Source: Dimorphilus gyrociliatus
Lineage: Eukaryota; Animalia; Annelida
Assembly: GCA_904063045.1 (NCBI GenBank)
Contig: CAJFCJ010000043.1
Span: forward strand, 1-59,362
DNA length: 59,362 nucleotides
Reading direction: 5' to 3'
This document shows, in pieces, positions 5,921-56,130 of this stretch. A program made the translations under genes and the position numbers. Positions within the stretch are counted from its first letter, which is position 1. The number at the start of each line of letters is the position of its first letter. The notes under the pieces are model-generated. The model made no database searches, was not told where the DNA came from, and saw nothing but the letters and a program-made list of their open reading frames with translations.

Positions 5921-6401
5921 TTATACTACTAGATGTAATGTTGCCATAAGACATGCAAAAGAAACAATTAAGCCTCCTACTATAGCTATAAAAGAACAAA
6001 CAATTGCATATCTTGCCCTTCTAATACCTTCTTCAGTATTACCAATTCATTTTGCTTCTCTACTTTTTAAACTGTTGTATATTGATAAAATTCCAAAGCA
6101 GATGCAGCAGAAACATCATATTGCCAAAGTTATACTCAATCTCTATAAAGAAAGAAAGAAAAAAAAAGCATAATTAGAAACATTAATATGATTAAAAAAA
6201 AATTCTATTCACATGTACCATAGTATCACCAACAGCTTTAAATTTAATATTTGCATTATTTCTACCTTGAAGCAATATCTTTATAATTTTATGTTCATTC
6301 AATAATGGTTGATCAACTACAACTGTTGTTGAATTAGTTGAATTTAAAACTTGATTACTACTAGGCATATTTCCACAATTTTTTACCAAACGTTGGATCA
6401 T
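5921..6401 (-). pseudogene. CD225/dispanin (IFITM/PRRT-family) membrane protein with two in-frame TGA
   Basis: Exon 1 6401-6219 (GT at 6218), exon 2 6142-5921 (AG at 6144-6143) reads RLSITLAI*CFCCICFGILSIYNSLKSREAK*IGNTEEGIRRARYAIVCSFIAIVGGLIVSFACLMATLHLVV*. This is the CD225 pattern: Cys cluster, G-I-(V/L)-(A/S)-I, helix, G-(D/N)-x-E-x-A, second hydrophobic segment. Confidence 0.75.
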
Positions 6402-7469
6402 TAAGATAAATCTTTAAGAAAATTTTTTTCAGTTGAGAAATTTCTATAGTCACTTTAATAAATCAAATGATTTTGAAAGAAAAACACTATAGTTTACTAT
6501 ATGTAAATATTTAATATTAAAGGCTTATCAAAATTAATCCAAAAAATATTGTTTGCATATTAAAGAGGATGAAGTAAATTCTATTTATAGAACAGTAACT
6601 GTTGGGATGAATTCATTTAGTAGAGAAATATGTTGTGTCACAGGATCAACATGAAGTGGATTTAATGAAATATATGTTGATTTTATATATTTATATATAC
6701 AAGTTAATATTTTAGTAGAAAAAATTTGGTTGAGTTTCCAGTTAAAATTCGTGTTCTTTCAAGCCATTACTTTACTCTAATGTTAACTTTTTCAAGTTTC
6801 AAGCTGTTTTTCATAAGATTTACTAAACTTTTAACATTTTCATTATTCAAATTATAACTCTTTAATGTTAATTTTTCTTATAGTCTGAAATGAATTTAAG
6901 ATTCATTGACAAATATTTGATAATCTATTTTCACATTTTCTAATTTTCTGATAAATTTAAAATTTTAATTTCAGCACATTTTCTCAATAGAGCTTTTTCA
7001 ATTATTTTACTTTGATATAAATGTCCTAAATCTAGTTGAAAAGGAAATTTTGTCTTTGATCATACACTAGTTTGCTTACTTGACAATCTGCTATTAAAAA
7101 TTACCTAATCTGCTATTCAACTTTTATATTGTAATATTCCAATAAAAATATTATATTATATTGTAACTATTCCAATAAAAACAATTGTTCAAAGTCTAGT
7201 AACAATACTTACTTTCTATTATAAAGTTGTACATTTTTTATAGGTTTAATTTTAGGCTTTTACAGTGTTTTGAATAATATGTGTACAATTTTTTAGCCTA
7301 TTAATAACAAATCTGCATTTTGACAAATGAAAAATAAGGATTTCAAACCAAAATATGAATAGCTTTGGCTTCTTTTCAGTTATATTAAATATGAATATGT
7401 CATTTGACAGGTGCAGCAATTATTATGAAGTTGATTAGAGAGGAGAACAAATAGGCAATAGCAGGAGGC

Positions 7470-9095
7470 ATGATGAAAAATTTTGAATTTTTTTACATTA
7501 CTACTATTCTTCTATTTGATGGAATAAATTTAATAAAAAGCAGTAGACAATGTAAGTAATAATATCCTTCAAAAAAACACTCTCTTTCTATGTTTACAAA
7601 ATCATTTATTTGAGTATGTAATCACTTTTTTTCTTACCTTTGTATGCTTTACTGAACATATGCTTTTGAAAGAAATTCAAGGACATAATATAGATACTAT
7701 AACCAATATCAATGTTGAAGAATGTAAATTAAAGTGTATTGAAAATCTTAATTGCAAGTAAAATAATTTTTTTAAATCAATATTTAAAAATTTAGATTTT
7801 TATTTACTAATTTCTAAAACAAATATTTGTCAACTATTGTTCTAATTTTAGGAAAGATTATTTTTGGTTTAAGAAAGGAGAATTTAAAAGTGAAATATTA
7901 TGAAATTTATATAAATCTATTCTCATCACATTTTTTTATGTTTTTTTTAAATAGATCAATTGACTACAAAATTACAGAAAACAAATGTTTTCTAAATTCA
8001 TTTAATCACCACAAACGTCCTGACCTATTTAGACAGGATAATAGCTTTGAATACTATGGTCCAAAAGATGGGCAATGCGATAATATCAATGTCCCCACTA
8101 GATGTTCTGCAGTCTCCAATAGAAAATGTGGATCAGATTCTACTAGTCAGGCACATTGCATAACATTTGGGTGTTGTTATTCAAACAATAAATGTCACTA
8201 TGACAACACATTTGTACCTGGTTTTGTACAAATATTAAGAAAAGCACAATTTACAACTTATTTAAAAGTTGATATTTCTGTAAGCTTAGAACAATGTTCT
8301 ATGAAATGTTTATCATTGTCAAATTGTAGATGTTTCACCTATAATTTTCAAACTACTGCTTGTATTTTAAGTTCTGAAGTATGTAGGGCTCAAGTTGATT
8401 TTTTAGGTGAAACTGCCTCCTATGATAGAATTTCATTCAAATCAATAAGTTGTTTTTTATCAAATTGTAATCTTCTTGATCAATTTGCTGTACAACATCT
8501 TTATGGTTGTAGAGATATATGCAAATCTGATAGTAAATGTGAATTCTTTGTCTATAAAAATGATTTTCGTCCTAATTGTTGTTCAACTGTAGAAAATTTT
8601 AATTGCAATTTGCTTTCTGATTTACACAAATATGATAATTATGTAACCAGCTGCTTTGATGGACCAATACTTAAAGATACCAATCAGCAAAAGGATGAAA
8701 AATTGATAAAAATTACTGATAGTATAAATCCTGAAACTTGTATTGATATCAACCCAACAAAAGATTTTACCTTGAGAATACCATGGCCTTCTGTTGATCA
8801 TTTAAATCCCGATTTTGAAATTGAAATTTCAGGATATCATTTCAAAAAATGTATAAATAAAGCAGAAGAATTACCTTTAGCTGGAATTTTGGCATAAGTT
8901 CCAGCAGATCATCAAGTTGACCCAAAATTTAATGAAAAATTTATTAGTTGGTCATTATTATCTGGTGATAATATATCAAATTGTAAATATTTCTGTAGTT
9001 GTAGATTACAATACTGTGAAGCAGTTTATATCAAAGCATTTCATGATTCAAGTGAAAATATGAAAGTTTGCCATTATCAAATAATCAATTTTTAA
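7470..9095 (+). pseudogene. Secreted multi-PAN/Apple + trefoil-like Cys-rich protein with premature TAA
   Basis: Leader exon 7470-7551 (gtaagt). PAN motif IQGHNIDTITNINVEECKLKCIENLNCK|SIDYKITENKCFLNS spans an intron. Trefoil-like RKCGSDSTSQAHCITFGCCYSNNKCHY, then two more PAN-like units. TAA at 8895-8897, but the same frame continues 65 codons to TAA 9093-9095. The exon-2 acceptor is not identifiable. Confidence 0.7.
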
Positions 9096-10909: not shown

Positions 10910-11030
10910 AGAAGGTTAATTGAATTATAACTTGGCCACACCTTAGGAAAAGTTAATTAAATTAAAACTTGGCCAAACCTTTATTTGTAATTAAAGATGA
11001 GCCTTCAAGCTGATTAATCAAACCTCTTTT
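10910..11030 (+). repeat. Short interspersed repeat; direct copy at about 20355-20440
   Basis: Shared GTTAATTGAATTATA.CTT..CCA..C and GA(T/G)CTGAGCCTTCAAGCTGA.TAATCA.ACCT-like blocks. Confidence 0.65.
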
Positions 11031-11225
11031 TGGCAATATAACCTTCAACAGAATGTCCACCAGGAGCTGTAACTGTTTCATCAATGTAATAGACTCCCTC
11101 TAAACTTGCAACAAAAAAATTCCTCTGTTTATCCCAAGCATTTCTTATATCAAATCTAAGATATTCAAACTTAATTGTTGACAAACTATTAAGTGAGCAG
11201 TTAAACACTGGTTTTCATCCAACAT
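11014..11225 (-). pseudogene. C1q globular-domain fragment
   Basis: KPVFNCSL..TIKFEYLRFDIRNAWDKQRNFFVASLEGVYYIDETVTAPGGHSVEGYI fits the C1q pattern (AFSA..I.FD...N.GNAY....G.F.AP..GVYYF..TV). Truncated, with an upstream stop. Confidence 0.6.
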
Positions 11226-11287
11226 CAATACTAACTGCTGGTAGATAAGGATCTAATTTAAAGGCTATTAAATGCTGTTTCTTTTCC

Positions 11288-11775: not shown

Positions 11776-12162
11776 TAATTATACTAAAAACTTTTAATGC
11801 CTTTTATATGTGTGAGATATACCACATGAACTGTATTTTTAACCAATACTTTATCTATATATTTGTTTTCTTTTCCTTGTACCAGAGTTGACACTGATTT
11901 GATACAAAAAAGAATCTTGTTATTGATATAGATTACATCAAGTGAATAAACATAAAATATAAATCATTTTTTATCAAACTTCTAATTGATTTATATACAA
12001 ATTTTGTATGAAAACGAAATTGATGATAATTGACTATATTTGAAATATTTCATTCAAAACATACTAAAGATTGTGGGAAATTATTAAAATCTCGCATCTG
12101 TAAACTTCAAAAATATTATATAAGGTGAAATAATTGTTCATTTAACAGAGAAACTTGCAGAG

Positions 12163-13035
12163 ATGAAAGTTCTAGCTTTACTTGTTGTTGTAGCTGTTGC
12201 CATTGAGGCAAAACCACATGATCCTGTTCGTTTGACCACAGATGTTGGCTACATTGTTGGTGGAGAAAATGCTTCTCCTGGGGAATTTCCATGGCAAGTT
12301 TCTTTGCAAAGATGTTCTGGAGGATCCTGTTCTCACAATTGTGGAGCTGTTGTCATGAATGCAAATTGGGTTTTGACTGCTGCTCACTGTATCCAAAACC
12401 CAGTTCTCTCTTCTCACAGATTGGTCTTTGGTCTTCACACCCGAAGTGATGAAACTGGAACTCAAGCTAGAACTCCATCCATTGTTACACCTCACCCTGA
12501 TTTTGTCAATGATGGAAGTTTAGGATTCCCTAATGATGTTGGTGTCATGAAATTTGATGAGGCTATCAACCTTTCTGGCAATGTTGCTGCTGCTACACTT
12601 GTTCCATCAAATGTTGGAACTTTGGCTGGACAAGCTTGTACTATTTCTGGTTGGGGTCGTACTGCTGGTGGAGCTCCTTTGGCCAACATTCTCCAAAAGG
12701 CAGAAACCCGTGTTCTCTCAACTGCTGAATGCCAAGCACAAGGAATTCCTCAAGCTGATGATGACATGCACATTTGCCTAAACAATGATGATCAAACCAC
12801 TAATTCATGCAATGTAAGTTTTAAATACTAATGTGAACTTTCAACAAATGTACATATACTACTATTACAGGGTGATTCTGGTGGCCCATTGAACTGTCCA
12901 ATTGGACCTAACAACTCTATGCAAATAGCTGGTATCACATCTTTTGGTATCATCTTCTGTCCACCAAGCAGACCAGCTGGATATGCCCGTGTTTCCTTTT
13001 ACCGTCAATGGATTGAAGACAACATGACTGATTAA
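12163..13035 (+). CDS. Secreted S1A serine protease (chymotrypsin/elastase-like), similar to earthworm fibrinolytic enzymes; 2 exons (12163-12813, 12871-13035)
   Basis: Signal peptide, activation site IVGGENASPGEFPWQ, TAAHC, NDVG, SCN|GDSGGP across a 57-nt gtaagt..ttacag intron, stop 13033-13035, AATAAA at about 13047. Confidence 0.95.
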
Positions 13036-23596: not shown

Positions 23597-24943
23597 ATGT
23601 TTAAGTTAATCTGTTGGATTTCTCTACTTTTTTCCAATGTATTACCATTAACAATATATAAACATGTAAATATTGCTTTTGAACAACGCAGCTTCTTATC
23701 TTCAACATATTCTACTAGCTATGATCATTTGGCTGTCAATGGAAAATTTAGTCCCATTTTCGCTAACTTTCAATATTGTAGTCAATCCGAATATGAAAAC
23801 AGGCCTTGGTATATAATTCAATTCGAAAGATCGTATATCATTCGTACAATAAGGATTTTGAATAGAGCAAGTTTTCCGGAAAGACTTAACAATTTAATTG
23901 TTGGAACGAAACTATCCAGAGACCTTTCAACAATAGACATCAATCAATTCCAAATTTTTTCCTCTTTTACTTCTCCACTTGGAAGTTCTGGAACTAAAAC
24001 AATGAAATTCTCCAACAAACCACATTACGCAAGTACAGTTATTTTTTATAAAATAGAAGCTAGTAGTATAACTTTTTGTCAAATTGAAATGTGGAGTTTG
24101 TCAAATATTGCTAAAAATAAATTATCCACCTTAAGTAGTTATTACGAAAGTTCAGATCCAGGAACTGCAGTTGATGGTGAGACTAATTGGCTTCATGGAC
24201 AAAATGGTATTAAATGCGCTCATACCTTCACTAATAGACACCCATGGTGGAAGGTTGATTTAGTAAAACAAAGCCAAATTTTGGCTGTAACAATAATTGG
24301 TAGAGGAGAGCACGCGGATAGATTAGAGAATCTTCGTATAGCCATTTCTAGTGAAGACGTTACTCCAACACCTGAAATTCCTGTAGAATGTGGCTATTAC
24401 AATGGACCATTGCCTCCTTATTTAACAATGAGATGTCCAAAATCAACAATTGGTCGTTATCTATCAGCAGTGATTGTTGCCGAGCATACAGCTCTTATTT
24501 TATGCGAATTGGACATTTTTGGTTATAATTTGGATGAAAATTTAAAAGTGAATACAATCTTTTACAATCAAACTGATTATTTCTATAGAATTAATAATCA
24601 AACTAAAGATTGTAATGGAAATTTAAAATCTACATCAGATATATCAGAATATCAAATATCATCATCATTTGAAATTGTCCTTAAAGGAATTGATATTGAA
24701 AGTAATTGTAGAAAAGGAGTCTTTAACGTTATGTCTACATTCCGAACGGAAATTCAACATGAATATTTAAATGAATGTAAACTTTTGCATACCAATGATG
24801 GATATTTTTCACAGAGTGATATGTATGATAAATGCACTTATCTTTGCAATTGTAATACTCACAATTGTATGTCATTTTCAATTATTCTTTCGTCATATTT
24901 ACAATCTATTTATAATGAGCTATTTATTTATTTCCATTATTAA
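23597..24943 (+). CDS. Secreted tandem F-type lectin (fucolectin / F5-8C fold) protein with C-terminal Cys module; single exon
   Basis: Signal MFKLICWISLLFSNVLP. Domain 1 NIA..S..SS..AVNG..CSQS..PWY; domain 2 NIAKNK.STLSS..AVDG..CAHT..HPWWKVDL..RGEHADRL..CELDIF. No stops. Confidence 0.9.
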   Translation: MFKLICWISLLFSNVLPLTIYKHVNIAFEQRSFLSSTYSTSYDHLAVNGKFSPIFANFQYCSQSEYENRPWYIIQFERSYIIRTIRILNRASFPERLNNLIVGTKLSRDLSTIDINQFQIFSSFTSPLGSSGTKTMKFSNKPHYASTVIFYKIEASSITFCQIEMWSLSNIAKNKLSTLSSYYESSDPGTAVDGETNWLHGQNGIKCAHTFTNRHPWWKVDLVKQSQILAVTIIGRGEHADRLENLRIAISSEDVTPTPEIPVECGYYNGPLPPYLTMRCPKSTIGRYLSAVIVAEHTALILCELDIFGYNLDENLKVNTIFYNQTDYFYRINNQTKDCNGNLKSTSDISEYQISSSFEIVLKGIDIESNCRKGVFNVMSTFRTEIQHEYLNECKLLHTNDGYFSQSDMYDKCTYLCNCNTHNCMSFSIILSSYLQSIYNELFIYFHY

Positions 24944-24964
24944 AAGAGAAAGTAAGATTATCTG

Positions 24965-26620: not shown

Positions 26621-26645
26621 GTATGTGTATTCTTTTTCTTTCCTG

Positions 26646-39100: not shown

Positions 39101-40457
39101 GAACAAATTCAAAATTTACTCCACTCTTCCTTGTTAAAGGATTGAAAAACCATCTAAAATATGAGTATTCTTTTATAGCTTTATTTATAGAATTTTTCTC
39201 TGTCCATGTTAATCCAATTTTGAATAGATCATAAAAAGCAAATAAACTAAGATAATAAATCTTTTCTTCCCCATTTATCGCTCTTCCCTTTCGTAAGCAT
39301 AATGTTAGAATATAGTCAAATATTTCATATTCATTGCGCAACATATTGAAATATTTTTGCTCTGTCCAAATAAATAATATTAAATATGCCATGAATGGAT
39401 TTTTACAAAGTTTGTAAAGATATTGTCTGTTACTGTTACTATTTAAGGTAGTTAAAAGTTGGTTCAACTCTGCCTCAGTTTTTTCTATTGAAATTTGAAA
39501 TAGCAAATCATTTCCAAAATTTGAATCTTTTAAGCATTTTTGGAAATATCTATATATCTGACGATCATCAAAACCTTTTAATTCAAAAATGGAATAATAA
39601 CAATTGTTTGAGGAATTTACTTGAAATAGTCTTTCTCCTCCTCCTCCTCCTCCTCCTCCTCCTCCTCCTGGTCCTCTTCTTGATAAGATAATCATTGGAC
39701 AGTGATAATTAAGAAATTTGTACTTTTCATTTATCATCAAATTATCATCATCAATTTCATCAAGAATTAAAATGATTTTTTCACTGCATTCAATTAGAAA
39801 ATGTGTAAATATTTCAAATGTGATTGTTGAATTATTACTGAAATTATATTTAAATAAAATTTCCTCAAATGAATAATTTCTATTTTCATCTTTAAATATT
39901 TCATTAAATTTGATGTATAAAATTAATCTATCCTGTAGAAATGATTCTCCCATATTCTCTGACCAGAAGTAGAGAATTTTCATTGAAAAGAACGTTTTGC
40001 CAATACCTCCAACGCCATAAATTAATAATTTGTCATCATTTTTTAAAAATTTTAAATAATTTAAAAATTGTTCAACTTTGAAAAATAAGCCAAAATTTTC
40101 TTGATTTTTATTACAATTTCTCAATAAAAGTTGAGTTGGTGTCGATATATCATCAAATTTAATATTAGAAGAATTTTGATTGTTCAATGAAAATTTAGGA
40201 TAGAATTCAAATTCCATTTGAAAAGAATATTTTCTTTCAATAATTACATTTTTCCATGTATTTTTAATCAAATTTTCAATTTCAGTATATTTCTTATCAA
40301 AGAATTGAATACTTTCTAAAATTTTCAACAGTTTGCTGCTATCATCAAAGCAATTTAAATTAATTTTTAACTCATGTAATTTTTTATTAAATAATTTATC
40401 ATTTTCTAGAACAGCTTTAATCTGTTTTGCATGATATTTTAAAAGAGGATTTTTCAT
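33150..40457 (-). CDS. Giant NACHT-LRR (NLR-like) protein, 2435 aa, one uninterrupted ORF
   Basis: Walker A GVGGIGKT, Walker B ILILDEIDD, IILSR sensor-1, LCKNPF, winged-helix FEFVHRLFKEYFAA; irregular LRRs, then 23 units of 57 aa (33243-37178). A small upstream exon cannot be excluded. Confidence 0.93.
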   Translation of the reverse strand: MKNPLLKYHAKQIKAVLENDKLFNKKLHELKINLNCFDDSSKLLKILESIQFFDKKYTEIENLIKNTWKNVIIERKYSFQMEFEFYPKFSLNNQNSSNIKFDDISTPTQLLLRNCNKNQENFGLFFKVEQFLNYLKFLKNDDKLLIYGVGGIGKTFFSMKILYFWSENMGESFLQDRLILYIKFNEIFKDENRNYSFEEILFKYNFSNNSTITFEIFTHFLIECSEKIILILDEIDDDNLMINEKYKFLNYHCPMIILSRRGPGGGGGGGGGGGERLFQVNSSNNCYYSIFELKGFDDRQIYRYFQKCLKDSNFGNDLLFQISIEKTEAELNQLLTTLNSNSNRQYLYKLCKNPFMAYLILFIWTEQKYFNMLRNEYEIFDYILTLCLRKGRAINGEEKIYYLSLFAFYDLFKIGLTWTEKNSINKAIKEYSYFRWFFNPLTRKSGVNFEFVHRLFKEYFAAKFIINSYQNNLHNNIQLIESIIRNLNNLFIVKQIFSFVLDIDYNIFTKLITITGLNNILSLLDINERLCTYIEKKSIINTIELSDFRLPIGIWRLILHDLNKEVKKVQINDTDVDLNNFIHIGQDFLKNSLSIMELSYNNVMSSIITLQTIESIMKNFKNLKVFKLKNIQFENSNNTTPLHIQSNSLKELYIENCGLAEAIEINCPNLKICKLVKVCRKLNLKQFFKDNFKLQKLNISGISLLNDLGKNFFEILNNLTISLSSLKCNDCEMITKSNDLLNFLKNHNHLNTLEMDGNQVDLIDKFVDTLDFFTSIFSAHCLKVLKLPIIKCPNNQITMKTATKIDDFLMIKLDLIYLDFGGNSLDNILIYNFIKKLTSFSISLKILATNCYNSTFNDLLNDINFSNYSNFKYLKIVHSNSNLNLKEFNELFTCPNKILSLNVIRKIHLKNCQLSDDFLTTLTNIWTELTSIKTLDISYNEFTKDTSLNFLKMIKHEKFQQFNNLYMHHCNWKNTDISEYLNSIMELKFLRIFNSNSNAAKLVSDAVVDVNSECFNLSKMKELLEIIKCISDLKIFDIQMFTNYERKIIQYLLNFTKIHLNKFFIQTYNFFGENSEFNYFKMLTQQLIFNKENIQELNLRNSLVGDFYGKILLECIKENCNRISKLNLENCGFTSEIGNIIGEVIGQQKNHLKEINLKSNILKSTIGQCIFENIQQNCCHIMILNVANCRFTSKIGTVFGDAIGKQKELRELYICNNCLDDCIGKNLFFNIKENCNNISHLDFESCEFTSKIGNILGNAIGKQKNLVFINGSENELGDYVGKNIFYNIKENCSLLLTINFWNCGFTPEIGNILGDAISQQTNIQHLLLYNNEFGDDVGKNIFLNIREKCSNILTLGFDACGFTSEIGEILRDAIYQQKHLQNLVINDNQLGNIVINNLLKVVAENCKNISAIDIGDCAPTTTTSQSVIDVINNDNCLEELSIKNAIYEFDCAKDIFLNIGNSGKNFYSLCFGNCYFHPGLTAILTDGIIKQDRLRELYLWEIRLGNEGWKYVLLNLKNNCPNISTLDLSNSGITSDIGNVLGYVIKKKKFLKQLYLWDNYIEDDVGEHLFHCIKETHHTITLLNIDNCGLTSNIGNILGDAIGQQHCLKELLLGNNQLEDTVGKNIFENIWKNCRKLTNIDCINCGFTSKIGDSIGNAIGCQKNLNELHLANNLFGDKVGRNIFHNIKNNCEIIKLLRVFNCGFTHQIGSIIGDAIGKQTSLQFLDISENYLGDFVGKSIFTNIRWNCSKISKFGLGKCGFTADIHNSLATAIGQQSNLKSLLLWHNEIGDFIGKYIFQMIEKNCQKISDLKLDNCRFSFQIGSIISNAIGQQNELETLSLCNNDFRDDFGKNLFKKIYENCQKITCLTVGNCQFTSKIGKILSKAIYQQKNLEILDISNNKLQDSAGRELLKSLEDSCTNLTKLDISNCGFTSAIGLILGDAISQQTSLISLTIKNNPLGDIVGKHLFSSIAKNNNRIELLNFSNCEFTTDVGFVMAKAIGCLKNLKIFICQENNLGNYIGKHLFKKINENCRNIEKIDCNTCNFTSALGNVVGDAIGKQTYIKELSFWNNQLGDDVGRSIFTNIHKYCRNIKVLNFGNCQFTSAIGNIIGDAIGEQRDLNNLYIWNNDFGDDLGKYIFKNLQENCYNLTNLYIGYCGFTSNLGNVIGEMIGQQYNLQSLVMWENSVGDHVGEEIFNCIKQNCNQLSVINCELCNFTFQIGNCIGEAIAQQKYLQNFNIAKNFLQDDVGRNIFENMKENCYNISKLIFDHCGFTTDIGYILGDAIGQQSRLQELTFSNNQLGDTVGINLFHRLKENCFSITVLKFENCGFTANIGDFLGDLIGQQTYLSVLNIANNQFGNDVGKCLFQNIKKYCKNICEIQCNNCGFTSKIGNIIYDAIVCQKQLQYFHIWNHQFLYRIDHHLSTDILVRNRLG
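39636..39668 (-). repeat. Perfect (GGA)11 microsatellite encoding poly-Gly inside the NACHT domain
   Basis: (TCC)11 on the + strand, in frame, giving IILSRRGP-G11-ERLF. Confidence 0.95.
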
Positions 40458-40676: not shown

Positions 40677-42227
40677 CAGGCTAATTTTGCTGAGGTAGAT
40701 AGTTTTTCCAATTGCTTCAATGTCAATACTGAGTCACTCTTGCGAAAAAATATTCCAATTTTTTAATGCGATGTCTCTCCTCTTCAAATTTCTTTCATTT
40801 ATTGATCAACCAATATTGTTCTATTTATCGGAAGTAGTATTGATCAATGTTTTATATTTGACAAATTAGCAGTAGTATTGACTTTGAATACATGGTTTTT
40901 GAAATTGATGATGATATACTAATTCCAGGGCCAAACTCAATTCTCTTTCTTCAAATTTACTCGACAACTGAAATATTTTAAATTCAAAAATCTTAAAGAA
41001 AAATTTTCTTAAAATGGACTAAAATATGAAAAATCCCAAAATGGGCCAAAATGTCACTGCATCAGTAATTTCTTTACATTCTAAAAATTTTGTTGAGTAA
41101 ATTACTTTTGTGGAAGTTGGGATAATTTTTGTCTTTACACTACTTTTTCTTATATTAAAAAATGAATAAATTCTTTTCTTTCCAATCATTTATCAACTCA
41201 CCAAAGTACTGGTCCAAATAGAACCTTCCAAGTTCGTCCACAAGTAGTCTTAACAAATGTAATTTTGGTGGAAATTAATTAACAAAATACCAGTATTTCA
41301 TTTAAAGAATATGTATTGAGTAAATGAGTTTCTACTTCTAAATAAGCAAGTTTAAACAACCAGCTGATGGTTACGGAACTGAACTACCAAAATGGTGAAA
41401 TGTAATTCCTTTTATACATTTCAAAAAGCCTGGGTTCACTTGGTCAAAGTCTAAATATTGTCATGTTATTATTTCTAAGTGCACAAAAATTGTCCATCAA
41501 TCAACTTTCAAATTATAACATTATTATCAAATATTCTTCAATATTCTCTAAAATTCTCAAATATTATCCAGGGTTAATATCAAAGCAATCCACAAGGTGT
41601 CTAATATCAATACCATCCACCAGGTGGCTACTATCAAAAATATTCAAGAGTCAAAATGAATCAATACCTTTATTGAAAACGTAATAAGAACTTTTCCCAA
41701 GTTAAAATTCACACTTGCAAACAATACATAACATTAAAAAAAAGACTCCAGACATTTTATCGAACTTTCGCGAACTGTAACTTTGTTAATACTACTCCAA
41801 TTGTACTCAAATTTTGTATGAGCTTGCATCTCACAAAAACAAACATCATGCATCAATAAAAATTCTTGACCCAAATTATGACCTTGCATGTATAAATTTT
41901 TTAAAAGTTATAAAAAAACAATAGGTAAACTAAAAACACTATTAGGTATATCTTTAGACAAAAAGTTGAATAGGCCTAAGTTACATGTTCATATTAAATA
42001 TCAACTTTAAAAACGCATTGGAAGTTTGTTTTTTTATCTCTATAGAATAATTGTAGTTTTTTTAAACGTTTTTAAAAAACAACAGCCAAAGTAAAAACAT
42101 TTTGAGGTCGATTTTTGCAGATTTATAATCAATAGCCAAAACTGTATAAGTCCATAAGTGATAAACCCAAAATTTTTTTGGGGACCCCTATGCAATCTTA
42201 ACGCTAATCCTGAGAACATTTTCAGAC

Positions 42228-42437
42228 TTGCTGGAATATTTTGAAAATACTTGGATTTTGAATTCTACTTGGAAACCATTGAACTGGTCAGTCTTTGGAT
42301 TATTAATAGGGACTAATAATAGTGTGAAAGGATGGTACAATAGACTGAGTAATAAAGTACAGAAACTATTTGAAATTTGGGATGATTATAGGCTTGGAAG
42401 GATATTAGCTGATGAATCTATTCTTTTCTTGAGTTAG
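42228..42437 (+). mobile_element. MULE transposase C-terminal relic
   Basis: LEYFENTWI..WKPLNWSVFG..TNNSVKGWYNRL. Confidence 0.75.
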
Positions 42438-42896
42438 CATATAGTATAATAGCTCTTCAATAAATATATTATCATATTTTTTTATTTCTATAAATATCAA
42501 CAACAACCGTTTTCCTTGGTCATCGTAAGACATTCACCCCTAATGGGTATGGATTTACCTGTAACCCTAATCTCTGTGGTTATTATATTATAAATATCTA
42601 TATATAATCTAAATGGATTTCCTACTTTCATTTTAATAGTTCATTAAGATTTTAAACAGTTTTCATTACAAAAGTTTCTAGTAGTTTCTCAAATAAACAC
42701 TTAACAAAACTAGAGACAGTTCCTTTGTTGGATTTATTCAAAATCAATGAGTAAATGTGTTAATCTCAAAAGAAAAGAAAGCATGATCAATGATCTTAAT
42801 ATGCAGTCAATACTAGAACAGAAATAAATTGATAAATTTGCATTTATAATTAGATGTAATAACACAAAAAACTGCAAAATTACTGATATTGAATAT

Positions 42897-43751
42897 TTAA
42901 ATTTCAATAGTAGAGTACTGTATATTGTATAGTAAAATTATTAATGAAGAAACAATGATGATAAGCACAGAGAAACTATTCTTATTAGAATGATTACATT
43001 TAGAACCTGAACAAATGCAGTAATTTGTCACAAAATTGTCATAAAAGATGGATCTAAATGATGCTTCAGAACAGTGATCTTCATCGTTACACCACGTTTT
43101 TTTGCAACCTCTGTGAATCTCATAGACTCCATTGTCAACTTTAATTTTCTTTTTAAAACATGCAACACCAACACAAAATTCCACACCATATACTGGTCCT
43201 TTAAATTCATCAAGACAGTTTCTACTCACCAATGAATTACATTGATAACATAGTTGGGCATTCGGATCCAAATTTGAAGTTACCGTTCGACATTTTTCCC
43301 TACTACCAGGTAAACTACCTCTGTTCAAACCACCCAAAGACACTGCTATTTTGATAACTTTTAAAATATTTCTAGCAACCTTAATGATATGGAGTTTTCT
43401 ATTTGTCACATTATAATTCAAATCTATGGAACAAGCCATATTCTGTAACATTAAATCATTAAAAGCAGTTTTTTCAACAGTAACTTCACTATTTCGATGG
43501 CAATAAGTTGACTTTGTTTCTAACTCTTCATTCAATTTTTCCACTTGAACAGAAACTGCTAATTCTTTTCCTTCAGTTGATATAAATCTTAAACAGTGTA
43601 AATTTCCTTCAAGCATCATTAAAACATCTTTATGAAGGTTGATTGAATCCACATGGGAAACAACATAATTGGTTATTACACACTGCGAATTTGTTTGATG
43701 AATGTTGATTATTAAAAATGATAGTAATTGCCAAAATGTATTAGTATTCAT
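42897..43751 (-). CDS. GPI-anchored surface protein: N-terminal (CUB-like?) domain + Ly6/quiver three-finger domain; single exon
   Basis: Signal MNTNTFWQLLSFLIINIHQTNS; CYQCNS...C.DEF...C...CFKK...RGC...C.C....CN; hydrophobic tail FSVLIIIVSSLIILLY. Confidence 0.85.
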   Translation of the reverse strand: MNTNTFWQLLSFLIINIHQTNSQCVITNYVVSHVDSINLHKDVLMMLEGNLHCLRFISTEGKELAVSVQVEKLNEELETKSTYCHRNSEVTVEKTAFNDLMLQNMACSIDLNYNVTNRKLHIIKVARNILKVIKIAVSLGGLNRGSLPGSREKCRTVTSNLDPNAQLCYQCNSLVSRNCLDEFKGPVYGVEFCVGVACFKKKIKVDNGVYEIHRGCKKTWCNDEDHCSEASFRSIFYDNFVTNYCICSGSKCNHSNKNSFSVLIIIVSSLIILLYNIQYSTIEI

Positions 43752-43838
43752 CTTATCAAAATGAAAATGAAAAATTTTGTTCTTTTCTTCTAACTTTAAA
43801 CCAGCCAGGTTATGCTAACCTTTTAATGTAATGCAAAA

Positions 43839-43890
43839 GAACATGTTTGGACATGTTGCCCTGGATAATGAAAGGTTAATGCACATGTTC
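43839..43890. promoter_or_regulatory. Candidate p53/p63-family response element in the bidirectional promoter
   Basis: GAACATGTTT-GGACATGTTG (43839-43858; RRRCWWGYYY x2, zero spacer, one mismatch) plus a third half-site GCACATGTTC (43881-43890). Confidence 0.5.
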
Positions 43891-43994
43891 TATTGCGTTT
43901 TAATTCTCCTCTTTGAGCAAGACTCTTGTCCTACAGATTTGTGTCATAAGAAAAATTGATTCAATGTCATTCTGTAGTAAGATCATTTCAGAAT

Positions 43995-44807
43995 ATGAAG
44001 ATATCTCTCTTCCAAGTATTACTTGGTTTCTTAACCATTCATCATTCTCTGTTGAGTTGTACATTTACAAATATCATTGTAACAAATTCAAAAGAAATGA
44101 ATCTTGATCAATTGAATTTTTTATCAGAAGGTAATCACTGTCTTCTATTTTTGACTAATGGTTTAAGTAAATTGAAAGTGTCTGTAACTACTGACAAAGC
44201 AAATCAACAATTAGAATATATTTGTGAAGAGAATGCCATTGTCAAATTACAGAAAATGGAGAAAGATAAAAATTTAAAATTTGATAGTGTAATTTGTATA
44301 AAGAATACAATTGATTCTACAATAAACAATACATCTATTGGTCAATTTAAGACAAAAGAATATTCTGAATTCTCTTCTCTCTTAAAAGTTACTGTAACAC
44401 TTCATTGGAGAATAAAGAAAGAAAGAGTTAACTCCAGAAATTTGAAAGCTAATTCAACAGCCTACTATAAGTATTGTTACAAATGCAATTCCATTACAAA
44501 CGATCATTGCGCTGATGAGTTTTTTAATGATACTTCACTTGATATATGTGAGAGTAACTCTTGTTATAAAAAGGTACTTGATTGGACTGGAAGTTTAAAA
44601 CATGTATATAGAGGCTGCACGGATACCGTTTTTGAATTTCCAACATGTTTTAGTGATAGACACACTTATAACTATGTACAAAATGTTATTACGAATCATT
44701 GTGTTTGTAAAGGAAGCTACTGCAATAATTCAAATTCATTTCAACCATTTATAATAACTATTGTTTTTATTCAATTTCAACTTTTTTATATTTTATATAA
44801 CATTTAA
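43995..44807 (+). CDS. Paralog of 42897-43751: N-terminal domain + Ly6/quiver three-finger domain, GPI signal
   Basis: Signal MKISLFQVLLGFLTIHHSLLS; EGNHCLLF matches EGNLHCLRF; CYKCNSITNDHCADEF..C...CYKK..RGC..HCVCKGSYCN; hydrophobic tail. Confidence 0.85.
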   Translation: MKISLFQVLLGFLTIHHSLLSCTFTNIIVTNSKEMNLDQLNFLSEGNHCLLFLTNGLSKLKVSVTTDKANQQLEYICEENAIVKLQKMEKDKNLKFDSVICIKNTIDSTINNTSIGQFKTKEYSEFSSLLKVTVTLHWRIKKERVNSRNLKANSTAYYKYCYKCNSITNDHCADEFFNDTSLDICESNSCYKKVLDWTGSLKHVYRGCTDTVFEFPTCFSDRHTYNYVQNVITNHCVCKGSYCNNSNSFQPFIITIVFIQFQLFYILYNI

Positions 44808-45909: not shown

Positions 45910-46815
45910 CTATTTGCAAGTAATCTTTTCAAAGAGGTTTCTGTAGAATTTTTTGGTTTGAAGCCTAATTGAATATTTAGTATAGCTATGAACAAGGGGA
46001 TTTATTGTTGAATTTGAGACACTAACTGTCAAAAACAAATTAAAGAGTAATCTAAATTCTTCATCTGATAAAGAAAATATTTCTTTCCTCTTATGATAAG
46101 TTGTAAGTGTAATTATGGATGGTACAACCAATATGATGGTATTGTATATTAATAAAATGGTTAAGACCTTAATACTACTTCCTTCAGATTTTGAACTGTC
46201 AACATTTGATAAATCAGAAATTGCTCTTCTGTGTTTTCTTATAGCTCTAAGAATTGGAAAGTATAATAGTAAACTGGTAATAGCATTCGGTATTACAGTA
46301 CTAAATGACCAAAAATAGAGATATCCAAAAGAAACAACATTTGTAGATTCGCAGAAAAGTGTTGTATTTTGTTCCTTAATAATATCATATTTATTCCAAG
46401 TGAAAACTGGAATTGAGCCAATGATAAAACTGATAAACCATATGAGAAAAAGAAGGATAAATGCTCTCTGTAATGTCCATATTTTGTGAAAAGTTAATGG
46501 TCTTTTAATAGCCAAAAAGTTTTCCAACATGATAAATGTCAGTGTAAAAGATGATATAGCAATGATCATGAAAGCAGTTTGAATTAAAATGATACAACTG
46601 TAAAAAGTCATTTCTGTTTTCTTTAAAAGATAAAAGAATAATAGGCTAATTGAATAAAGAATATCAGTAAAAATCAGAGCTGTCACACCAAAATTTTGTA
46701 ATTTCCATAAATCTTTATTGATTGTACGAATTAATATTAAATTACAATTTAGACAAAGTCCAGCAAATTGACTTGAACAGGAAATAAATAGAATAAAATT
46801 TTCAACATAATCCAT
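45910..46815 (-). CDS. Orphan class A (rhodopsin-like) GPCR, single exon, 301 aa
   Basis: Seven hydrophobic segments; TM1 LN, TM2 L.FTD, TM3 C...LENFLAIKRP, TM4 W, TM7 NSTINPLVHSY; very short N-terminus. Confidence 0.9.
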   Translation of the reverse strand: MDYVENFILFISCSSQFAGLCLNCNLILIRTINKDLWKLQNFGVTALIFTDILYSISLLFFYLLKKTEMTFYSCIILIQTAFMIIAISSFTLTFIMLENFLAIKRPLTFHKIWTLQRAFILLFLIWFISFIIGSIPVFTWNKYDIIKEQNTTLFCESTNVVSFGYLYFWSFSTVIPNAITSLLLYFPILRAIRKHRRAISDLSNVDSSKSEGSSIKVLTILLIYNTIILVVPSIITLTTYHKRKEIFSLSDEEFRLLFNLFLTVSVSNSTINPLVHSYTKYSIRLQTKKFYRNLFEKITCK

Positions 46816-47299
46816 CTTTATGTTATTAGAAGCAGCCTTGCAGTAAATGATTAAGTATAGTGTTCTATAGATTTATAAACCTTTTATCCCCTCATCTGTT
46901 ATTTATAAATTGCTTTGTAATTTGCTGTGTTTATAATATATCAGTTTGTAAACTGGCAAAGTCATTCTTGTCAAATATCAGGAATACTTGATAGATGAGC
47001 TAAAATTGTAAACCAAACAATCAGCATAGTTTCATAATTAATGATATCATAATAGAAGCAAACATAGTTAATTAATGTCAAGATAATTTTAACTTTATCT
47101 TTGCACTACAAAATTGAGATGAAAGTTTTCTCTCCAACATAATTTCTATTTCATTACTGAACATAATAATCCTCAGCAGTCAGCTTCAGGTTTATTAATT
47201 TTTAAAATTTGTAATAATCAAATGAATTTATAATTTGGTTAAGCTTGGTTATAGGAGGAAAAACTAAGCTAACAAATTTTAAATTCATATTGTTTATAT

Positions 47300-47505
47300 G
47301 GGTGGGGGTGCGAATGTACAATGGGAGGGTCGAAGCCTACCTTAATATATCTAAGGTTGAGTGTTATATCTGTGTTATTTATATTCCCTAACCCTAAATT
47401 GGAGCCCCTCTAACAATAAATCTAATCAAATTTTCAAACTTACCCTTTCCTAAAATATTTTCAGGGTTGGAAATATTTGCTAACAGGTACATTTGCACCT
47501 GACCC
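47300..47505. mobile_element. 206-bp Mutator-type MITE; partial related copy at about 51255-51330
   Basis: Ends GGGTGGGGGTGCGAATGTAC and (rc) GGGTCAGGTGCAAATGTAC; flanks TGTTTATAT / TGGTTAAAT (7 of 9, decayed TSD); internal CCCTAACCCTAAA. Confidence 0.65.
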
Positions 47506-50487: not shown

Positions 50488-52114
50488 TCAAGTGAAAAAG
50501 AAGGGGTTAGATGCGAATGTATCAGAGTGTGAACACACACCTACTCAAAAAAAAGTGTTTTCAATTAAAAGTGACTTTTTTTTTAAAATGAAAAAAAAAA
50601 CTAAATAATTTAAAACTGAACCTTAAGTATGACCAGGCAAGGTCTGAGTTTGACCAAAGGATGATTGTATTTCTGGTTGTAGGTTTTTGAATAAGTGGTA
50701 TATAGTAGGAGAGTATGAGCATAAAAATAAGGAAAGTTGTACAATACTGTAGTACTTTAGGGACTTTTACTGCAATAGAAATATAACAAATTACTGGCTT
50801 TAAACAGAGAGAAAAAATCAGATTTTGAAAATTTTAGTATATGAATATTGCTTAGATATATATATACAATATCCCCAAGATTTAACTTTAAAAAGAAGTT
50901 CTCTTAAAAAAACTATTGGAAATTGTCAGACAATAAGACAAAAAAATTCTACTTGAAATGGATGGACATATTGGTGATATTGGAAAAAAAAATATATAAT
51001 TCACTCAGAACTTTAATCTGATTAGAGTGTTGGATCAAAGCGTGTTAATATAGGAAGAAAAAGTGGAAATGTAATATTCAAATTGTTTTGATTTAAAACT
51101 CATCTTTTGCATATCATCTGTCCAGCTTATTAGTTATCCATTATCAAGAATGATATAATTAGTCAAACAAGTTACTCTACCCAAATGAAATTTTATAGTA
51201 CTTTAGAGGTGTTTCTCCTTCTTCAGATGAGTTGAAAGGACTCAGTTCTAATCAGGTTGTGGGTGCAAATGTATCATTGGAAGGTCAAAGCCTGCCTTAC
51301 TAAATCTGAAATTGACTGTAATATCTGTTTGAGATCTAAAAATTATTTAAAAAGCTTTAAGACTACAGTGTTTATTATCTAAGCCTATATATTTCAGGAC
51401 TAGAAGGTTACTCAACAGCCTATGTGTAAATGTTCTACAGTATTTCTAATTGAAGGTTATTGAAGGTCAAGGGCAAAATATAATGGATCAATATGCTTAT
51501 GATATAATGTACAATGTATAAAAACAATGCAAACTCTACTCAAAAGACAAAATATTTCTTTAAATAGATTTCAAAGTTATTCATTATTTAAATATTAAAG
51601 ATTTCTAAATTTCATGTGTATTGCACATAGCTGCATTCTAGAAAAACAAGATCAAAAGCAAGATTATGTCTTTAGTCACTTTGTCACAGAGATTTCTATT
51701 TGAATGTAAAAAAAGAAACATTTTGATCATCCACAGTATTATTTCATTAATATCATTTTACATTCTGACAAAAGTTTCTTAATAATTTTGAATAAAGCAG
51801 ACTTTGCTTGTAAAGTTACCATGGTTATAGAATTGATACAAAAAAGAAACAGAAAAAAAAGTATTGGGAAATAAATTACTTAATGATTGTGTTATATATA
51901 TATATTCCTGAATAGTTTCCTCTTCTCCTCCATTACTTTAAGTTATCAATAACTCAAGATTAATTCTGATATTGTATTTTGTATTAAAAAAGAAATATGG
52001 ATAATAGTTAAGTAAAAGATATTGAGAATGTGAAAAGGAATTGTAAGTTGCATCTGAAATTTGAGATAAATCTTGAGCTATTTTCACTGCTTTCTTTGGT
52101 GTGATAAAGATAGG

Positions 52115-52849
52115 ATGGAGAAGAAACTTAACAATACTACATTTCTTTTAACAATTGATGAAATAGATTTGAAATTTTTTTCACCATTTTTAATTTATAT
52201 ATCAATTGTTATACTAATTGGAATACCTTTAAATATTCTAATCCTATTTTTTTATGATTCTAAAGAAAAGAAAGTATCATCATCATTCAATCCTGATAAT
52301 ATATTTATAAAGAGTATGGCAATTATTGATATTTTAATTTGTGGAATTTGTGGTCCATATTCAATAATTTTGGAACTGGGTTTTATAAAAAATGTTCTAC
52401 TTTGTAAAATATTTTCATTCATCTATCATTTTCTTTTAGTTTCATCATCATTTACATTTATGTTTGTTGCTATTGAAAGATGGTTTGGTGTTTGTAAACC
52501 ACTTAAAAAACTTAATAGACAACATATTAAAATAATGTTTTTATTAATTGGTTTATTTGCATCCATTGCTGGTCTAATAAATAGTTTATCACATGGAATT
52601 AAAATTGATGAAAGGCACAATACTGGTCATATTTTTAAAACTTGCTTCTCCCAATCTGGAATAATGGATGACATTTATAAATATCTTATTTGTATTGTAT
52701 ATATTGGAGCAGCTATTTTACTATATTCAATTTATGGTCTTATTTATAGAGTTATCTATTTAAGAAGTTTAAAATTAAGAAAAAATAAAGTGAGTGATAA
52801 TAGAGATACTATAAAAGATTTTAAAAATCTTAAAAAAGGATTTCTTTAA
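52115..52849 (+). pseudogene. Class A peptide-receptor-like GPCR truncated after TM5
   Basis: GIPLN (TM1), MAIID..CG..P (TM2), LCK..AIERWFGVCKP (TM3), TM4, TM5 ..YGLIY, then stop in ICL3. No TM6/TM7 can follow before the convergent RNF213 3' end at 52914. Confidence 0.75.
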
Positions 52850-52913: not shown

Positions 52914-55900
52914 TCAATCATCATTAGGTAAAGTTTCCTTCATAGTGTCATATATAATTTTCCAAACTTCAATTCCATTTTCCATTATAATTTCCTTTGG
53001 CCATTGTTCTATTGGTTCAAATAGTGGTAGATTTAAATCAGTAAGATAAATGTCAAATATCTGCTCTAGGCTGCAAAAAGGAGAAAGAGAAATTTAGTAA
53101 TGTTATAATCAAAAATCACAAACACTTACGGATATTTCATATTATCTGGATCATCACTATATTCATAAATAATCAGTGAATGAGGATTTCATTAGCTACT
53201 TTTGCCTTTTGTTCAACACTTTTCTTAATTGCTTCTTTACACTTTTGACACAGTTGAGCATCATCAGGAACTATAAATAGTTGATGATCAATTAATAATT
53301 TATTGTGTTCTCTATCCAAAATACTCCAAAGATCTTCAACATGCTCAACATTACAACATTCTTTTACAGCTTTTGGGAAGCAGTCAGTTTTCAGGCTCAA
53401 TTCTTTAAGAAATTTATTTAACTTTTTGTTTGAGGAAACATCTGACAAAGTTGATAAATAGTCAATAGCAGTATTTAGAGTTGACCAACTATTATAAACT
53501 TCATCTATAAGCAGACATTCTTGAGATAATTGATCTGCAATATCTTTATCCAATGTAACTTGCTTAATGTTCAATTTTTTCAATTTAGTTTTCATTAAAA
53601 CATCATTGTTGCAAACAATGTATGGAATATTGTTAAATCTTAGTTCAGGATGATTATTCAACCATAAATAAGATAGTTGATGTCTTAAAAACTTAAAATT
53701 ATAAGTTATAGTCTCTTTTTTTGATCTTAATTCTATTTCATGTGAACTTGCTGAGAGAACTAAAATTTCAACATCCCTTTCAGCGTCAATATTAACAACT
53801 CTTTACATTAGAATCTTGAAATGGAAAAAAAAGAAGAAATCATTTTTTTAAATTTTAAAAACTTGAATTTTTGACACTGTGTCAAATAACTTTTTAAGCC
53901 TAAGGTATTATTGACAATGCTTACCTTTAATTTTCTTTAGACTGTTCCTGCAGCTCTTCCATGCCTTTTCAAATGACTTAAACAATTCTATATACTCTTC
54001 ATAAACTCTTTTATCATCTTGTTTGTAAGAATGTAGGGTTTTTTCTTTGAGTTGTTTTCTGGAGATTTTCCCCCATAAACTCTTAGTAACATTATAAATT
54101 AATTTCATAATGTTTGGAAGGTGTTTTATCAATTCAATCTGTTTTGCTTCTGTTAGAGCCAATAATATCAGCTTTTTATCAGCAGTTTCTTCACCATCTT
54201 TTTTCAATATACTGATAGCCTTATCAACAGTGATAATTTCTATATTTTTCCACATTTTTCTATTTCTTTGAAAAAGTTCATTATTGTCATTCTGTTGTTC
54301 ATCTCTCTGAATAATAGAAAGTCCTAAAGGATTTTATGTGGCACCACTATCTTCTTGTATTATCTGCTGAGTATGTTCTAAATTTTTAAGAGCATTTTCT
54401 ATCAATCTACTAGCAAAGATCTTTTCCCATTTTTCTCTGGATTTTTATTCATAGCAACTAGCATGATTATATAAAAAATTGCTCTTAAAATTGCTATATT
54501 TAATTCAGATAGACGATGGTATTTGACATTTTCATTCCATGCTGCTTCCCCAATAATATGACCACTTTGACTTTTAAAGTCATCTTCAGTCAATCTCGGA
54601 TTTCCTTTAGAATGATTATTCCAAGCACCACCAATCTCAACATTGCCTGCCCATTTTCCCAAGGCCTTCCACAGTCTCCAATTAAATACAAATGACCATT
54701 TGGACAAAAGTTTGCAGTAGTATTCTCAAACTTAAAGAGATTAAAGAGTAGATTAAAGCAACTTCTGCATGAAAAATCAGGTTGGAAAGAGGATTGCCAA
54801 AAATTTCATTATCTTTCTTTTCATTTAGAAATCTAGGAAATTCTCTATTAACTAAACTATTCCATAGTTTTTGATTGCAGAAGATCATCTTAGATCTCAA
54901 TTCATTCTCCTAAATACTAGAAAAGGATGGGGGGATAAAAGTATGGAGACAAAATAAAATTAATAACAATAACATGAAATCTTACCTGATCCAAAAATAT
55001 TTTTGATGTACTAGCAGATATTGCTGTATGGAGAGCAAGGATAGATAAATGTGGTTTTTCTAGTGATATTGTATCTAAGAGTTCATGGTTATTTGAGTTT
55101 TTAGAATAAAACAAACTGCGAATATTTTTATAGTCATTGTTGTTGTTATACAATAAGAATATATCTGAATTTGTTAAATCTGGAAATTTCTGTGAATCAA
55201 TCAGCCATTGAAAGTTTTGACATTTAAGTAAAAAAGATATTCCAGTCATTGGATACTTTTCAAAAATATATGTTAACAAGAAAATTCTTGGATTAGGATT
55301 TGGTCCTTGACACAAAGATTCAGCTGCTTGATTAATTTCTTTATCAACATTATCCAAATTCTCAATAGATATTGAAGCAATTTTCTTAAGACAACATCTT
55401 AAAACATCAATCCTTAAAAGAGTTTAAAAATCTTAAAAGGTCTACAGTTGTTAGTTCAGTTTTCAAACAGTACAGCTTGTTTTTATTAAACTTGCTGTTT
55501 TGGAAGTAGATGCTCCATTTTTTATCCACTACATCTGATTAATTAATTTCTTGTTTAATTACATGTTTTTGAGACTATTTGTAAAAGAATTTCTATTTGT
55601 GTGAGTATGGATTATGGAATGAACTTCCCATAGAATGAACGTCCCATTTTCAAAAGAATACACCTACTTGAAAGAAAAATTTAATATTTAAAAAATGAAT
55701 TATATATTTTAAAAGATATTTATACTTTTCAATGATGTAATGAGTAATCATTGTATCCACCCAAGAAAACTGATCTGATATTGGCAGTCAGATTGAAAGA
55801 TTGTGATAGAATGCTGGAACCACAGAAAATTAATCAGGGGAAAACTGCTCTACTAATGCACTTCTTCAAAAGAGAGCATGTGCCCTCAATGTTTATTTCA

Positions 55901-56130
55901 GATATTTTAGGCTGTGCATTTCAAGAATTTGAGAAAAAATGTTCAGGGTTAGATTTCCCAGTAGTTATCTCATAAAATCGCTTGAAATGTTCAATGAAAT
56001 AGCACCCAACATTGTAATACAGTTTATTTTCTTTTTAAGGCATATTGAATTAAGGAAAAAATGATCCAAACCAGAGTCACGGCATGAATCCACTAAAATT
56101 GATAATCCAAGTAGCATTGCCAATCATCTA
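52914..56130 (-). pseudogene. RNF213: C-terminal half of an RNF213/mysterin-like E3 ligase including RZ finger, multi-exon, disabled
   Basis: CPNGHLYLIGDCGRPWENG..(frameshift)NVEIGG..H..KSQSGHIIG (RZ finger + following motif); LEHTQQIIQED..*NPLGLSII; last exon SLEQIFDIYL..WPKEIIMENGIEVWKII, like the RNF213 C-terminus (SL..TL.SY..FPEEILL...VWK). Stops at 54334-54336 and 53173-53175. The 5' limit is approximate. Confidence 0.8.

Follow-up and report, generated by a model that had tools for sequence, protein, structure and literature searches.

The window analyzed here comprises the first 59,362 bases of C43, an unplaced 171.5-kb contig from the annelid Dimorphilus gyrociliatus. A block of ∼50 kb within it brings together a very large NACHT-LRR gene of the NLR family, a pair of GBP-like GTPase genes, a piece of an RNF213 gene and a CD225/IFITM-like sequence, along with an F-type lectin gene, a C1q-like trace and additional open reading frames (ORFs) with LRR repeats. 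The NLR, GBP, RNF213 and CD225 families all act in mammalian cell-autonomous immunity, and an earlier note on this DNA had proposed that the block may be a linked intracellular-defence locus whose effectors have died in this haplotype, with a repeat-rich sink for expanded families as its fallback. Our analysis confirmed the underlying observation in part: most of the earlier domain calls hold, and three corrections apply (the RNF213 gene is a short 3' relic, the C1q call is marginal, and non-immune genes and transposons are interspersed among the immune-type genes). Overall, we consider it probable that the block belongs to a fast-turnover, birth-and-death compartment of the genome, as opposed to a conserved and co-regulated defence cluster.

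The window was screened via its long ORFs and Pfam, while six-frame scans for individual families covered the whole assembly (77.9 Mb in 349 contigs, ∼28% G+C); all genome-wide match counts given below are lower bounds. The published genome of this species is compact (73.8 Mb; PMC7854359). From the list of the earlier note, the NACHT-LRR gene, two GBP-like genes, CD225, the F-type lectin and the extra LRR ORFs were all located by Pfam and PDB searches, and their positions are given in Table 1 together with those of the surrounding features. Three window ORFs were looked up as exact sequences in a protein collection, and none was present there.

Table 1. Features of the window (positions from its first base; an arrow gives the direction of reading)
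Feature	Position	Strand	Evidence and remarks
FLYWCH zinc-finger ORF	1790-2188	-	26 bits
LRR ORF, 453 residues, open	3997-5355	-	Pfam LRR_4/LRR_1; NLR-type 28+29-residue repeats, no NACHT attached
CD225/IFITM-like relic	5954-6118	-	PF04505, 33.1 bits (cut-off 27.1); two in-frame TGA, frame break at start
PAN-domain gene	7818-8894	+	Pfam; non-immune
C1q-like weak trace	11017-11286	-	Pfam C1q, 16.2 bits, E 0.013 (cut-off 23.7)
Trypsin gene	12124-12828	+	Pfam; non-immune
F-type (fucose-binding) lectin, open ORF of 475 residues	23516-24940	+	PF22633, 2e-12, 48 bits; one domain at residues 197-340
Reverse-transcriptase fragment	24927-25292	-	RVT_1, 3.9e-18; YLDD motif; abuts 3' end of lectin ORF
GBP-like gene A, dead	28023→26649	-	P-loop exon kept, GLFRKGKSFLMNLLY then stop; DxxG exon deleted; 3' end and CaaX missing
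GBP-like gene B, dead	28212→31567	+	G1 YREGKSFLMSLLY, G3 LDSQG, RD motif, last exon predicted to be helical, C-terminus KKKKSGICVIS then stop
MULE-like DNA transposon, 1548 bp	28536-30083		52-nt terminal inverted repeats; inserted in exon 2 of gene B
NACHT-LRR gene, single exon, intact, 2435 residues	33150-40457	-	Pfam, PDB phmmer, motifs
Young repeat, ∼1.3 kb	41500-42800		97-98% copies at C35:124395-125803, C40:137088-138468, C105:562-1939
Ly6/QVR-domain gene pair, divergent orientation	42897-44807		Pfam QVR, 4.7e-8 and 2e-6; context, non-immune family
Rhodopsin-type G-protein-coupled receptor	45910-46815	-	Pfam 7tm_1, 2e-18; at least 10 paralogs detected, every one on a small scaffold
∼210-bp repeat	47286-47505		at least 15 copies, 86-90% identity, small scaffolds only; MITE- or SINE-like
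Second rhodopsin-type G-protein-coupled receptor	52073-52849	+	Pfam 7tm_1, 8e-16; paralogs on C48, C57, C145
RNF213 paralog, 3' relic	∼55423→53176	-	tblastn with C31 RNF213 ORFs; collinear, 40-47% amino-acid identity
NLR-type LRR ORF leaving window end	58589-59362	-	ORF and LRR comparison

The giant NACHT-LRR gene is an uninterrupted ORF, just as the earlier note had it. Its translation contains a Walker A (GVGGIGKT) and a Walker B (LILDEIDD) motif, and the Pfam NACHT profile reaches 26.3 bits over the full ORF (30.5 bits when all six frames were scanned). The LRRs are of the ribonuclease-inhibitor/NLRP type, with PDB phmmer matches to ribonuclease inhibitor (E 5e-25) and NLRP3 (E 2e-13). No Pfam domain was found at E ≤ 0.01 in residues 1-140, so that no PYD, CARD or DEATH domain was detected there. 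An open paralog of 2449 residues is present at C98:70703-78049 (81.5% nucleotide and 70% amino-acid identity); the gene was copied as a 7.4-kb unit with no flanks in common with the C98 locus. Tandem Repeats Finder detected no array in the gene, its LRR units being only ∼65% identical at the DNA level. A (GGA)12 microsatellite (∼39630-39670, minus strand) encodes a run of 13 glycines within the NACHT region, an odd feature for a genome of 28% G+C. Further NLR-type LRR genes had also been claimed, and open ORFs of this kind do lie near both ends of the window; blastp aligns the left one with other LRR ORFs of C43 and C35 at 38-48% identity, and with the window NLR at 22%.

Two GBP paralogs, one of them with a CaaX box, had been predicted as well, and both were found, arranged head to head and both disrupted. 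The six-frame scan with the Pfam GBP profile (PF02263) matched the window at 27679-27867 (minus strand, one TAG inside) with 22 bits, against a curated cut-off of 21.1. A head-to-head pair of intact-looking GBP-like genes, each with several exons, occupies C35:69168-73325, and window positions 26626-31762 are a partial duplicate of C35:69551-73519 (87-90% identity, ∼5 kb, without shared flanks). Gene models were assessed exon by exon. The GBP profile aligns collinearly with the C35 exons (its positions 6-60 followed by 70-126), scoring 28.5 + 12.1 bits for gene A, the first exon of which exceeds the cut-off on its own, and 15.7 + 16.2 bits for gene B. The GxxRxGKS signature of the G1 loop is represented by GLFRKGKS in window gene A and RYREGKS in window gene B, and the same motifs are carried by the C35 copies. 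The G3 motif DxxG, and the RD that stands in place of N/TKxD, appear as LDSQG and TCRD in C35-B and as LDSQG and (C)RDRP in window B. Polybasic stretches precede the last residues of both C35 proteins, CAIQ in A and CVIS in B, and window B also terminates in CVIS; in all three proteins this terminus is a CaaX box, as in prenylated GBPs.

The C-terminal region of these proteins is far more divergent. Pfam GBP_C had no match genome-wide, nor in the last exon of the GBP-like genes. The clusters nearest to this exon that carry a name in the ESM Atlas are all GBP_C (scores 0.85-0.77), which we take as a lead only, and an AlphaFold2 model of the C35-B last exon (from a 5-sequence alignment) is all-helical at low confidence (pLDDT 63, pTM 0.25). 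A PDB phmmer search with exon 1 of C35-B returned nothing relevant. No transmembrane-like hydrophobic stretches were seen in the GBP-like proteins, whereas two are present in an atlastin encoded on C19. The latter gene gave a strong "GBP" match adjoining a NACHT match and was dropped from the linkage test described below once recognized as atlastin by its motifs (FRKGKSFLLDF, LVRDW) and its two transmembrane-like stretches.

The lesions of the window pair can be traced against the C35 genes. In gene A (compared with C35:69168-71128), a 261-bp deletion takes out the DxxG exon and a stop directly follows the P-loop; the 3' end is missing because the duplicated segment ends within the gene. In gene B, exon 2 is split by the 1.55-kb MULE-like element, which is bounded by a 9-bp target duplication (GTTTCATTT, at 28527-28535 and 30084-30092) and has an empty site in the C35 copy; a frameshift follows in the last exon near 31200. 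The parts of window B that align with C35-B are 82% and 71% identical at the amino-acid level and contain internal stops. The element itself carries an internal ORF (28845-29582, minus strand) with a weak match to MULE transposase, and ∼70%-identical copies of it are found on C98.

This GBP-like family also includes two convergent genes on C17 and a single gene on C29. Intact copies exist on C35, C17 and C29. The C17 pair (C17:306939-311694) lies next to a hAT transposase ORF, and one of its genes is followed by a small ORF whose terminus, CTCM, may be a further CaaX box. At C4:1606708, far from any NACHT match, the genome has another GBP-like gene that is of a more canonical type and separate from this family. 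GBPs are poorly known among invertebrates (PMC9005921), and the divergent family reported here, several members of which end in a CaaX box, was previously undescribed.

The earlier note had described the RNF213 sequence as a C-terminal half with an RZ finger. A homologous C-terminal relic with an RZ remnant is indeed present; it corresponds to the last ∼900 residues (∼15% of the protein, not half), with E values down to 5e-59 in comparison with the true RNF213 gene of this genome at C31:78000-89159 (PDB matches of its AAA and RZ parts at E 1e-261 and 4e-33, respectively). A tblastn search of the window with all C31 RNF213 ORFs gave no match to the AAA core or the RING and no similarity above position 55423. 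Since PDB phmmer with the two window pieces returned nothing relevant, their homology is established via the genome's own RNF213 and Pfam. The RZ remnant (54650-54712, minus strand; PF20173, 33.4 bits) covers only profile positions 10-32. The loss of its CxxC pair, noticed earlier, is confirmed by the comparison with C31, where ECNVCKAQIGG is matched in the window by AGNVEIGG after a frame change; at least three frame changes occur around the finger. As read from its sequence, the window piece cannot be a working RNF213. With regard to a possible origin as a retrocopy, it reads through one intron position of the C31 gene (88047/88107) and appears to retain the break at another (86699/86857). 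A second C-terminal relic of RNF213, at C60:100129-100825, is 69% identical to the window piece at the amino-acid level and contains two TAA. The RZ finger has three matches in the genome, one of them in a gene on C2 that has only the finger in common with RNF213 and is probably ZNFX1.

The remaining immune-type sequences fall on both sides of the line between intact and broken. The CD225 domain scores above its cut-off, in agreement with the earlier call of a CD225/IFITM-like gene, but its frame is not open: the minus strand reads CFCCICFGILSIYNSLKSREAK, a stop and then IGNTEEGIRRARYAIV, and its beginning carries another stop or a frame break. The F-type lectin is intact. Pfam first flagged it as of the F5/8-C/NedA type, and PDB matches (3CQO, FBP32, E 2e-21; 1K12, eel agglutinin, E 4e-10) identify it as a true F-type lectin. 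The C1q gene of the earlier list reduces to a trace that does not reach the C1q cut-off; a tblastn search with five C1q proteins of the same genome gave a best E of 7.6e-4, and the genome-wide six-frame C1q scan had no match in the window. The proposal of an intact NLR among dead effectors is borne out: the NLR ORF is open, and CD225, the RNF213 piece and the two GBP-like genes are all disrupted.

Mobile sequences are frequent around these genes. FLYWCH zinc fingers are often transposon-derived, and the transposon load of the window comprises the FLYWCH ORF, the reverse-transcriptase fragment, the MULE-like element, the young 97-98% repeat and the ∼210-bp repeat. The young repeat at 41500-42800 looks recently active. 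The published genome average for transposable elements is 4.87% (PMC7854359).

The left end of the window, which includes the CD225 relic, is also present elsewhere in the assembly: positions 1-6316 equal C168:6310-1, reversed, at 99.7% identity, an end-to-end contig overlap that was left unmerged, so that C168 prolongs the sequence leftward of the window. The idea that part of the block has a haplotig was tried and rejected, since the assembly has no other long stretch that is nearly identical to 41.5-56.5 kb.

The genome-wide distribution of the families is strongly uneven. Small scaffolds, defined as C34-C349, account for 20.0% of the assembly (C1-C33 total 62.3 Mb; lengths were sampled for 70 contigs) and hold 63 of the 98 NACHT matches (64%), ∼109 of the 138 C1q matches (79%, our own count), 16 of the 29 CD225 matches (55%) and 28 of the 30 F-lectin matches (93%). 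The low-copy families are spread differently, with two of the ∼6 GBP-family loci (four of them of the divergent GBP-like kind) and one of the three RZ-finger matches on small scaffolds. With most NACHT, CD225 and F-lectin matches in a fifth of the assembly, the fallback of the earlier note, a repeat-rich sink for expanded families, fits better than a defence locus. On large scaffolds the NACHT matches look clustered toward the ends (C16, 0.99-1.03 of 1.04 Mb; C10, 1.59-1.63 of 1.76 Mb; C5, the first 0.6 Mb). According to the published analysis, the nine expanded families of D. gyrociliatus consist for the most part of immune genes that were duplicated locally (PMC7854359).

The same compartment is not confined to immunity. 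The detected paralogs of the two G-protein-coupled receptors in the window (68-85% nucleotide identity) are on small scaffolds only, in contrast to only 3 of the 150 best-scoring (conserved) receptors listed, and the compartment therefore gathers several lineage-specific expansions, not immune ones alone. These receptor subfamilies are themselves a non-immune expansion within the small scaffolds.

Taken together, these data are best accommodated by a compartment made up of the small unplaced scaffolds and, apparently, of the NACHT clusters near scaffold ends. Within it, expanded lineage-specific families would arise, be copied in gene-sized pieces, suffer transposon hits and decay. Among the immune-type genes of the block, open frames remain in the NLR, in the F-type lectin and in part of the LRR ORFs, and the GBP-like pair, RNF213, CD225 and C1q are incomplete or disrupted copies of genes with intact versions elsewhere. 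Their co-location would be a by-product of the shared compartment. This account draws on lesions, duplication units, genome-wide distributions and unlinked intact loci that were directly observed. We infer from them that compartment, rather than function, explains why these genes lie together; presumably none of the relics is expressed.

Several results weigh against this account. The earlier note had allowed that the families may be so expanded that their co-occurrence is expected by chance, which holds for NLR, C1q, CD225, lectin and LRR genes but not for the two low-copy families, neither of which is expanded (four GBP-like loci; one RNF213 gene and two relics). In simulations that placed family clusters at random, either uniformly or keeping the large/small split of each family, and that accepted any 50.2-kb window, the probability under independent placement was ∼0.02 for GBP with RZ and ∼0.002 for GBP, RZ and NACHT, while all four families including CD225 came together in none of 5000 runs (0/5000). 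Each of the four GBP-like loci (C35, C43, C17, C29) has a NACHT match at a distance of 5-27 kb. Coding constraint on the RNF213 relic lasted until recently, as is shown by its long open stretches (209, 168 and 141 codons, with the genome at 28% G+C). Finally, the single-base frame breaks could in part be errors of long-read assembly.

The simulated probabilities have to be read with caution. The set of families was picked after the window had been seen, and the window is one of ∼1300 scanned in the genome; given twelve or more low-copy immune families, two of them would be expected to be co-located somewhere. All three low-copy items of the window are relics, and relics may gather in common regions. 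A null with two compartments is also a coarse one. As for the proximity of the families outside the window, CD225 clusters show no excess near NACHT (4 of 25 within 30 kb, close to expectation). No NACHT, GBP or CD225 match was found on the scaffolds of the intact RNF213 gene (C31) or of the other RZ-finger gene (C2), and no NACHT or CD225 match on that of the second RNF213 relic (C60). Of the linkages seen in the window, only that of GBP-like genes with NACHT genes recurs.

The adjacency of GBP-like genes to NACHT genes is the basis of the alternative that survives best, one we regard as possible but doubtful, namely that lineage-specific GBP-like GTPases, several of them with a CaaX box, work with STAND/NACHT sensors and therefore stay linked to them, and that RNF213, CD225 and C1q are bystanders. 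With random placement within the own contig of each locus, the most conservative null, the finding of four loci out of four so close to NACHT has a Fisher p of 0.015 (0.019 without C35), and regions this near to NACHT matches cover only 2.8% of the large scaffolds and 15.4% of the small ones. Moreover, the NLRs of the window and of C35 are only 24-27% identical and stand on opposite sides of the GBP pair, so that the adjacency was not simply inherited with the duplication. On the other hand, the sample is limited to four loci, a duplication connects two of these, and the partners are mixed: a NACHT-LRR gene in the window and on C35, a NACHT-TPR gene of the NWD1/NPHP3 type on C29, and a hAT transposase with an LRR ORF on C17. 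The GBP pair and the NLR of the window are tail to tail and share no promoter. Since NACHT matches are clustered, and their number is a lower bound, local NACHT density may account for the result. In our view the adjacency is a modest, real signal that could reflect either functional pairing or merely shared islands. The C29 partner consists of a NACHT/nSTAND1 ORF and, after it, a TPR ORF (NWD1/NPHP3-like, C29:140832-143502), 10 kb from the GBP-like gene.

A more specific version of this alternative, which we consider unlikely, would have an annelid-specific GBP-like family, often in pairs, that is kept next to STAND/NACHT sensors and acts together with them, the window being a decayed copy of the module. 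Such a module, if real, would parallel in an invertebrate the GBP-to-inflammasome axis of mammals.

Slightly less likely again is the reading originally favored, a true linked intracellular-defence locus in which NLR, GBP, RNF213 and CD225 are kept together functionally and only this copy or haplotype has lost its effectors. The nominal rarity of the combination in the simulations speaks for it, as does the established role of all four families in mammals; if it were true, the block would be a rare invertebrate case of physically linked cell-autonomous defence genes. The evidence on the opposite side is broader. The paralogous loci are unlinked, in that the scaffolds of the RNF213 gene, the second relic and the other RZ-finger gene are devoid of the partners listed above, and CD225 has no NACHT excess. 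The duplication units are separate and gene-sized (5 kb for the GBP pair, 7.4 kb for the NLR), without shared flanks, and non-immune genes (the receptors, Ly6, trypsin and PAN) are interspersed among the putative members. The choice of families after inspection of the window applies here too, and no allelic copy of 41.5-56.5 kb that could hold intact effectors was found. The claim of a conserved, functional linked locus is therefore not sustained by the way in which its parts were copied and distributed. An assembly artefact, with C43 being chimeric or an unresolved join of repeat-rich reads whose genes are not true neighbors, is highly improbable: although C43 is an unplaced scaffold that begins with an unmerged overlap to C168, and although its 97-98% identical repeat copies could mislead an assembler, the features are 1.6-15 kb apart, inside long-read length, the boundaries of the GBP pair and the NLR against their paralogs are clean, and no sign of a join was seen.

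Under the birth-and-death reading, the window would picture a compact animal genome that confines a few expanded families (NLR, C1q, CD225, F-lectin and some G-protein-coupled receptors) to a transposon-invaded, hard-to-assemble fifth of its assembly, and would show low-copy immune genes leaving partial relics in the same compartment. The presence of GBP-like genes near NACHT is a testable lead, and this adjacency, together with the GBP-like family itself, is the part most worth following.

A comparison with known systems places the individual genes at different distances from their mammalian counterparts. The window NLR resembles mammalian NLRP-type NLRs in that LRRs of the ribonuclease-inhibitor type follow a NACHT that carries Walker A and B; it differs in a far longer LRR region, in the poly-glycine run encoded by (GGA)12 inside the NACHT and in the absence of a detected PYD, CARD or DEATH domain in its first 140 residues. 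The GBP-like proteins share with vertebrate GBP1/2/5 a large GTPase domain with G1 GxxRxGKS, G3 DxxG and an RD replacing N/TKxD, as well as a polybasic stretch and a terminal CaaX (CVIS, CAIQ); their long C-terminal part is predicted to be helical. In contrast to the vertebrate proteins, they are very divergent (with GBP_C undetected by Pfam and exon 1 without a relevant PDB phmmer match), their genes come in head-to-head or convergent pairs, and the window copies are dead. The RNF213 piece is homologous to the RZ-containing C-terminal domain of RNF213 (mysterin, a giant AAA/E3 ligase with an RZ finger), from which it differs in having no AAA core, no RING, an RZ finger without its CxxC pair and a broken frame. 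As a whole, the window differs from invertebrate birth-and-death innate clusters, such as NLR, C1q and lectin expansions, in containing relics of two low-copy families, GBP-like and RNF213, which is unusual under simple nulls. In other respects it is very much like them, with tandem and dispersed gene-sized duplicates, intact genes mixed with pseudogenes, transposon insertions, poorly assembled repeat-rich DNA and paralogs that have diverged strongly (the window NLR and its C98 relative share 70% amino-acid identity).

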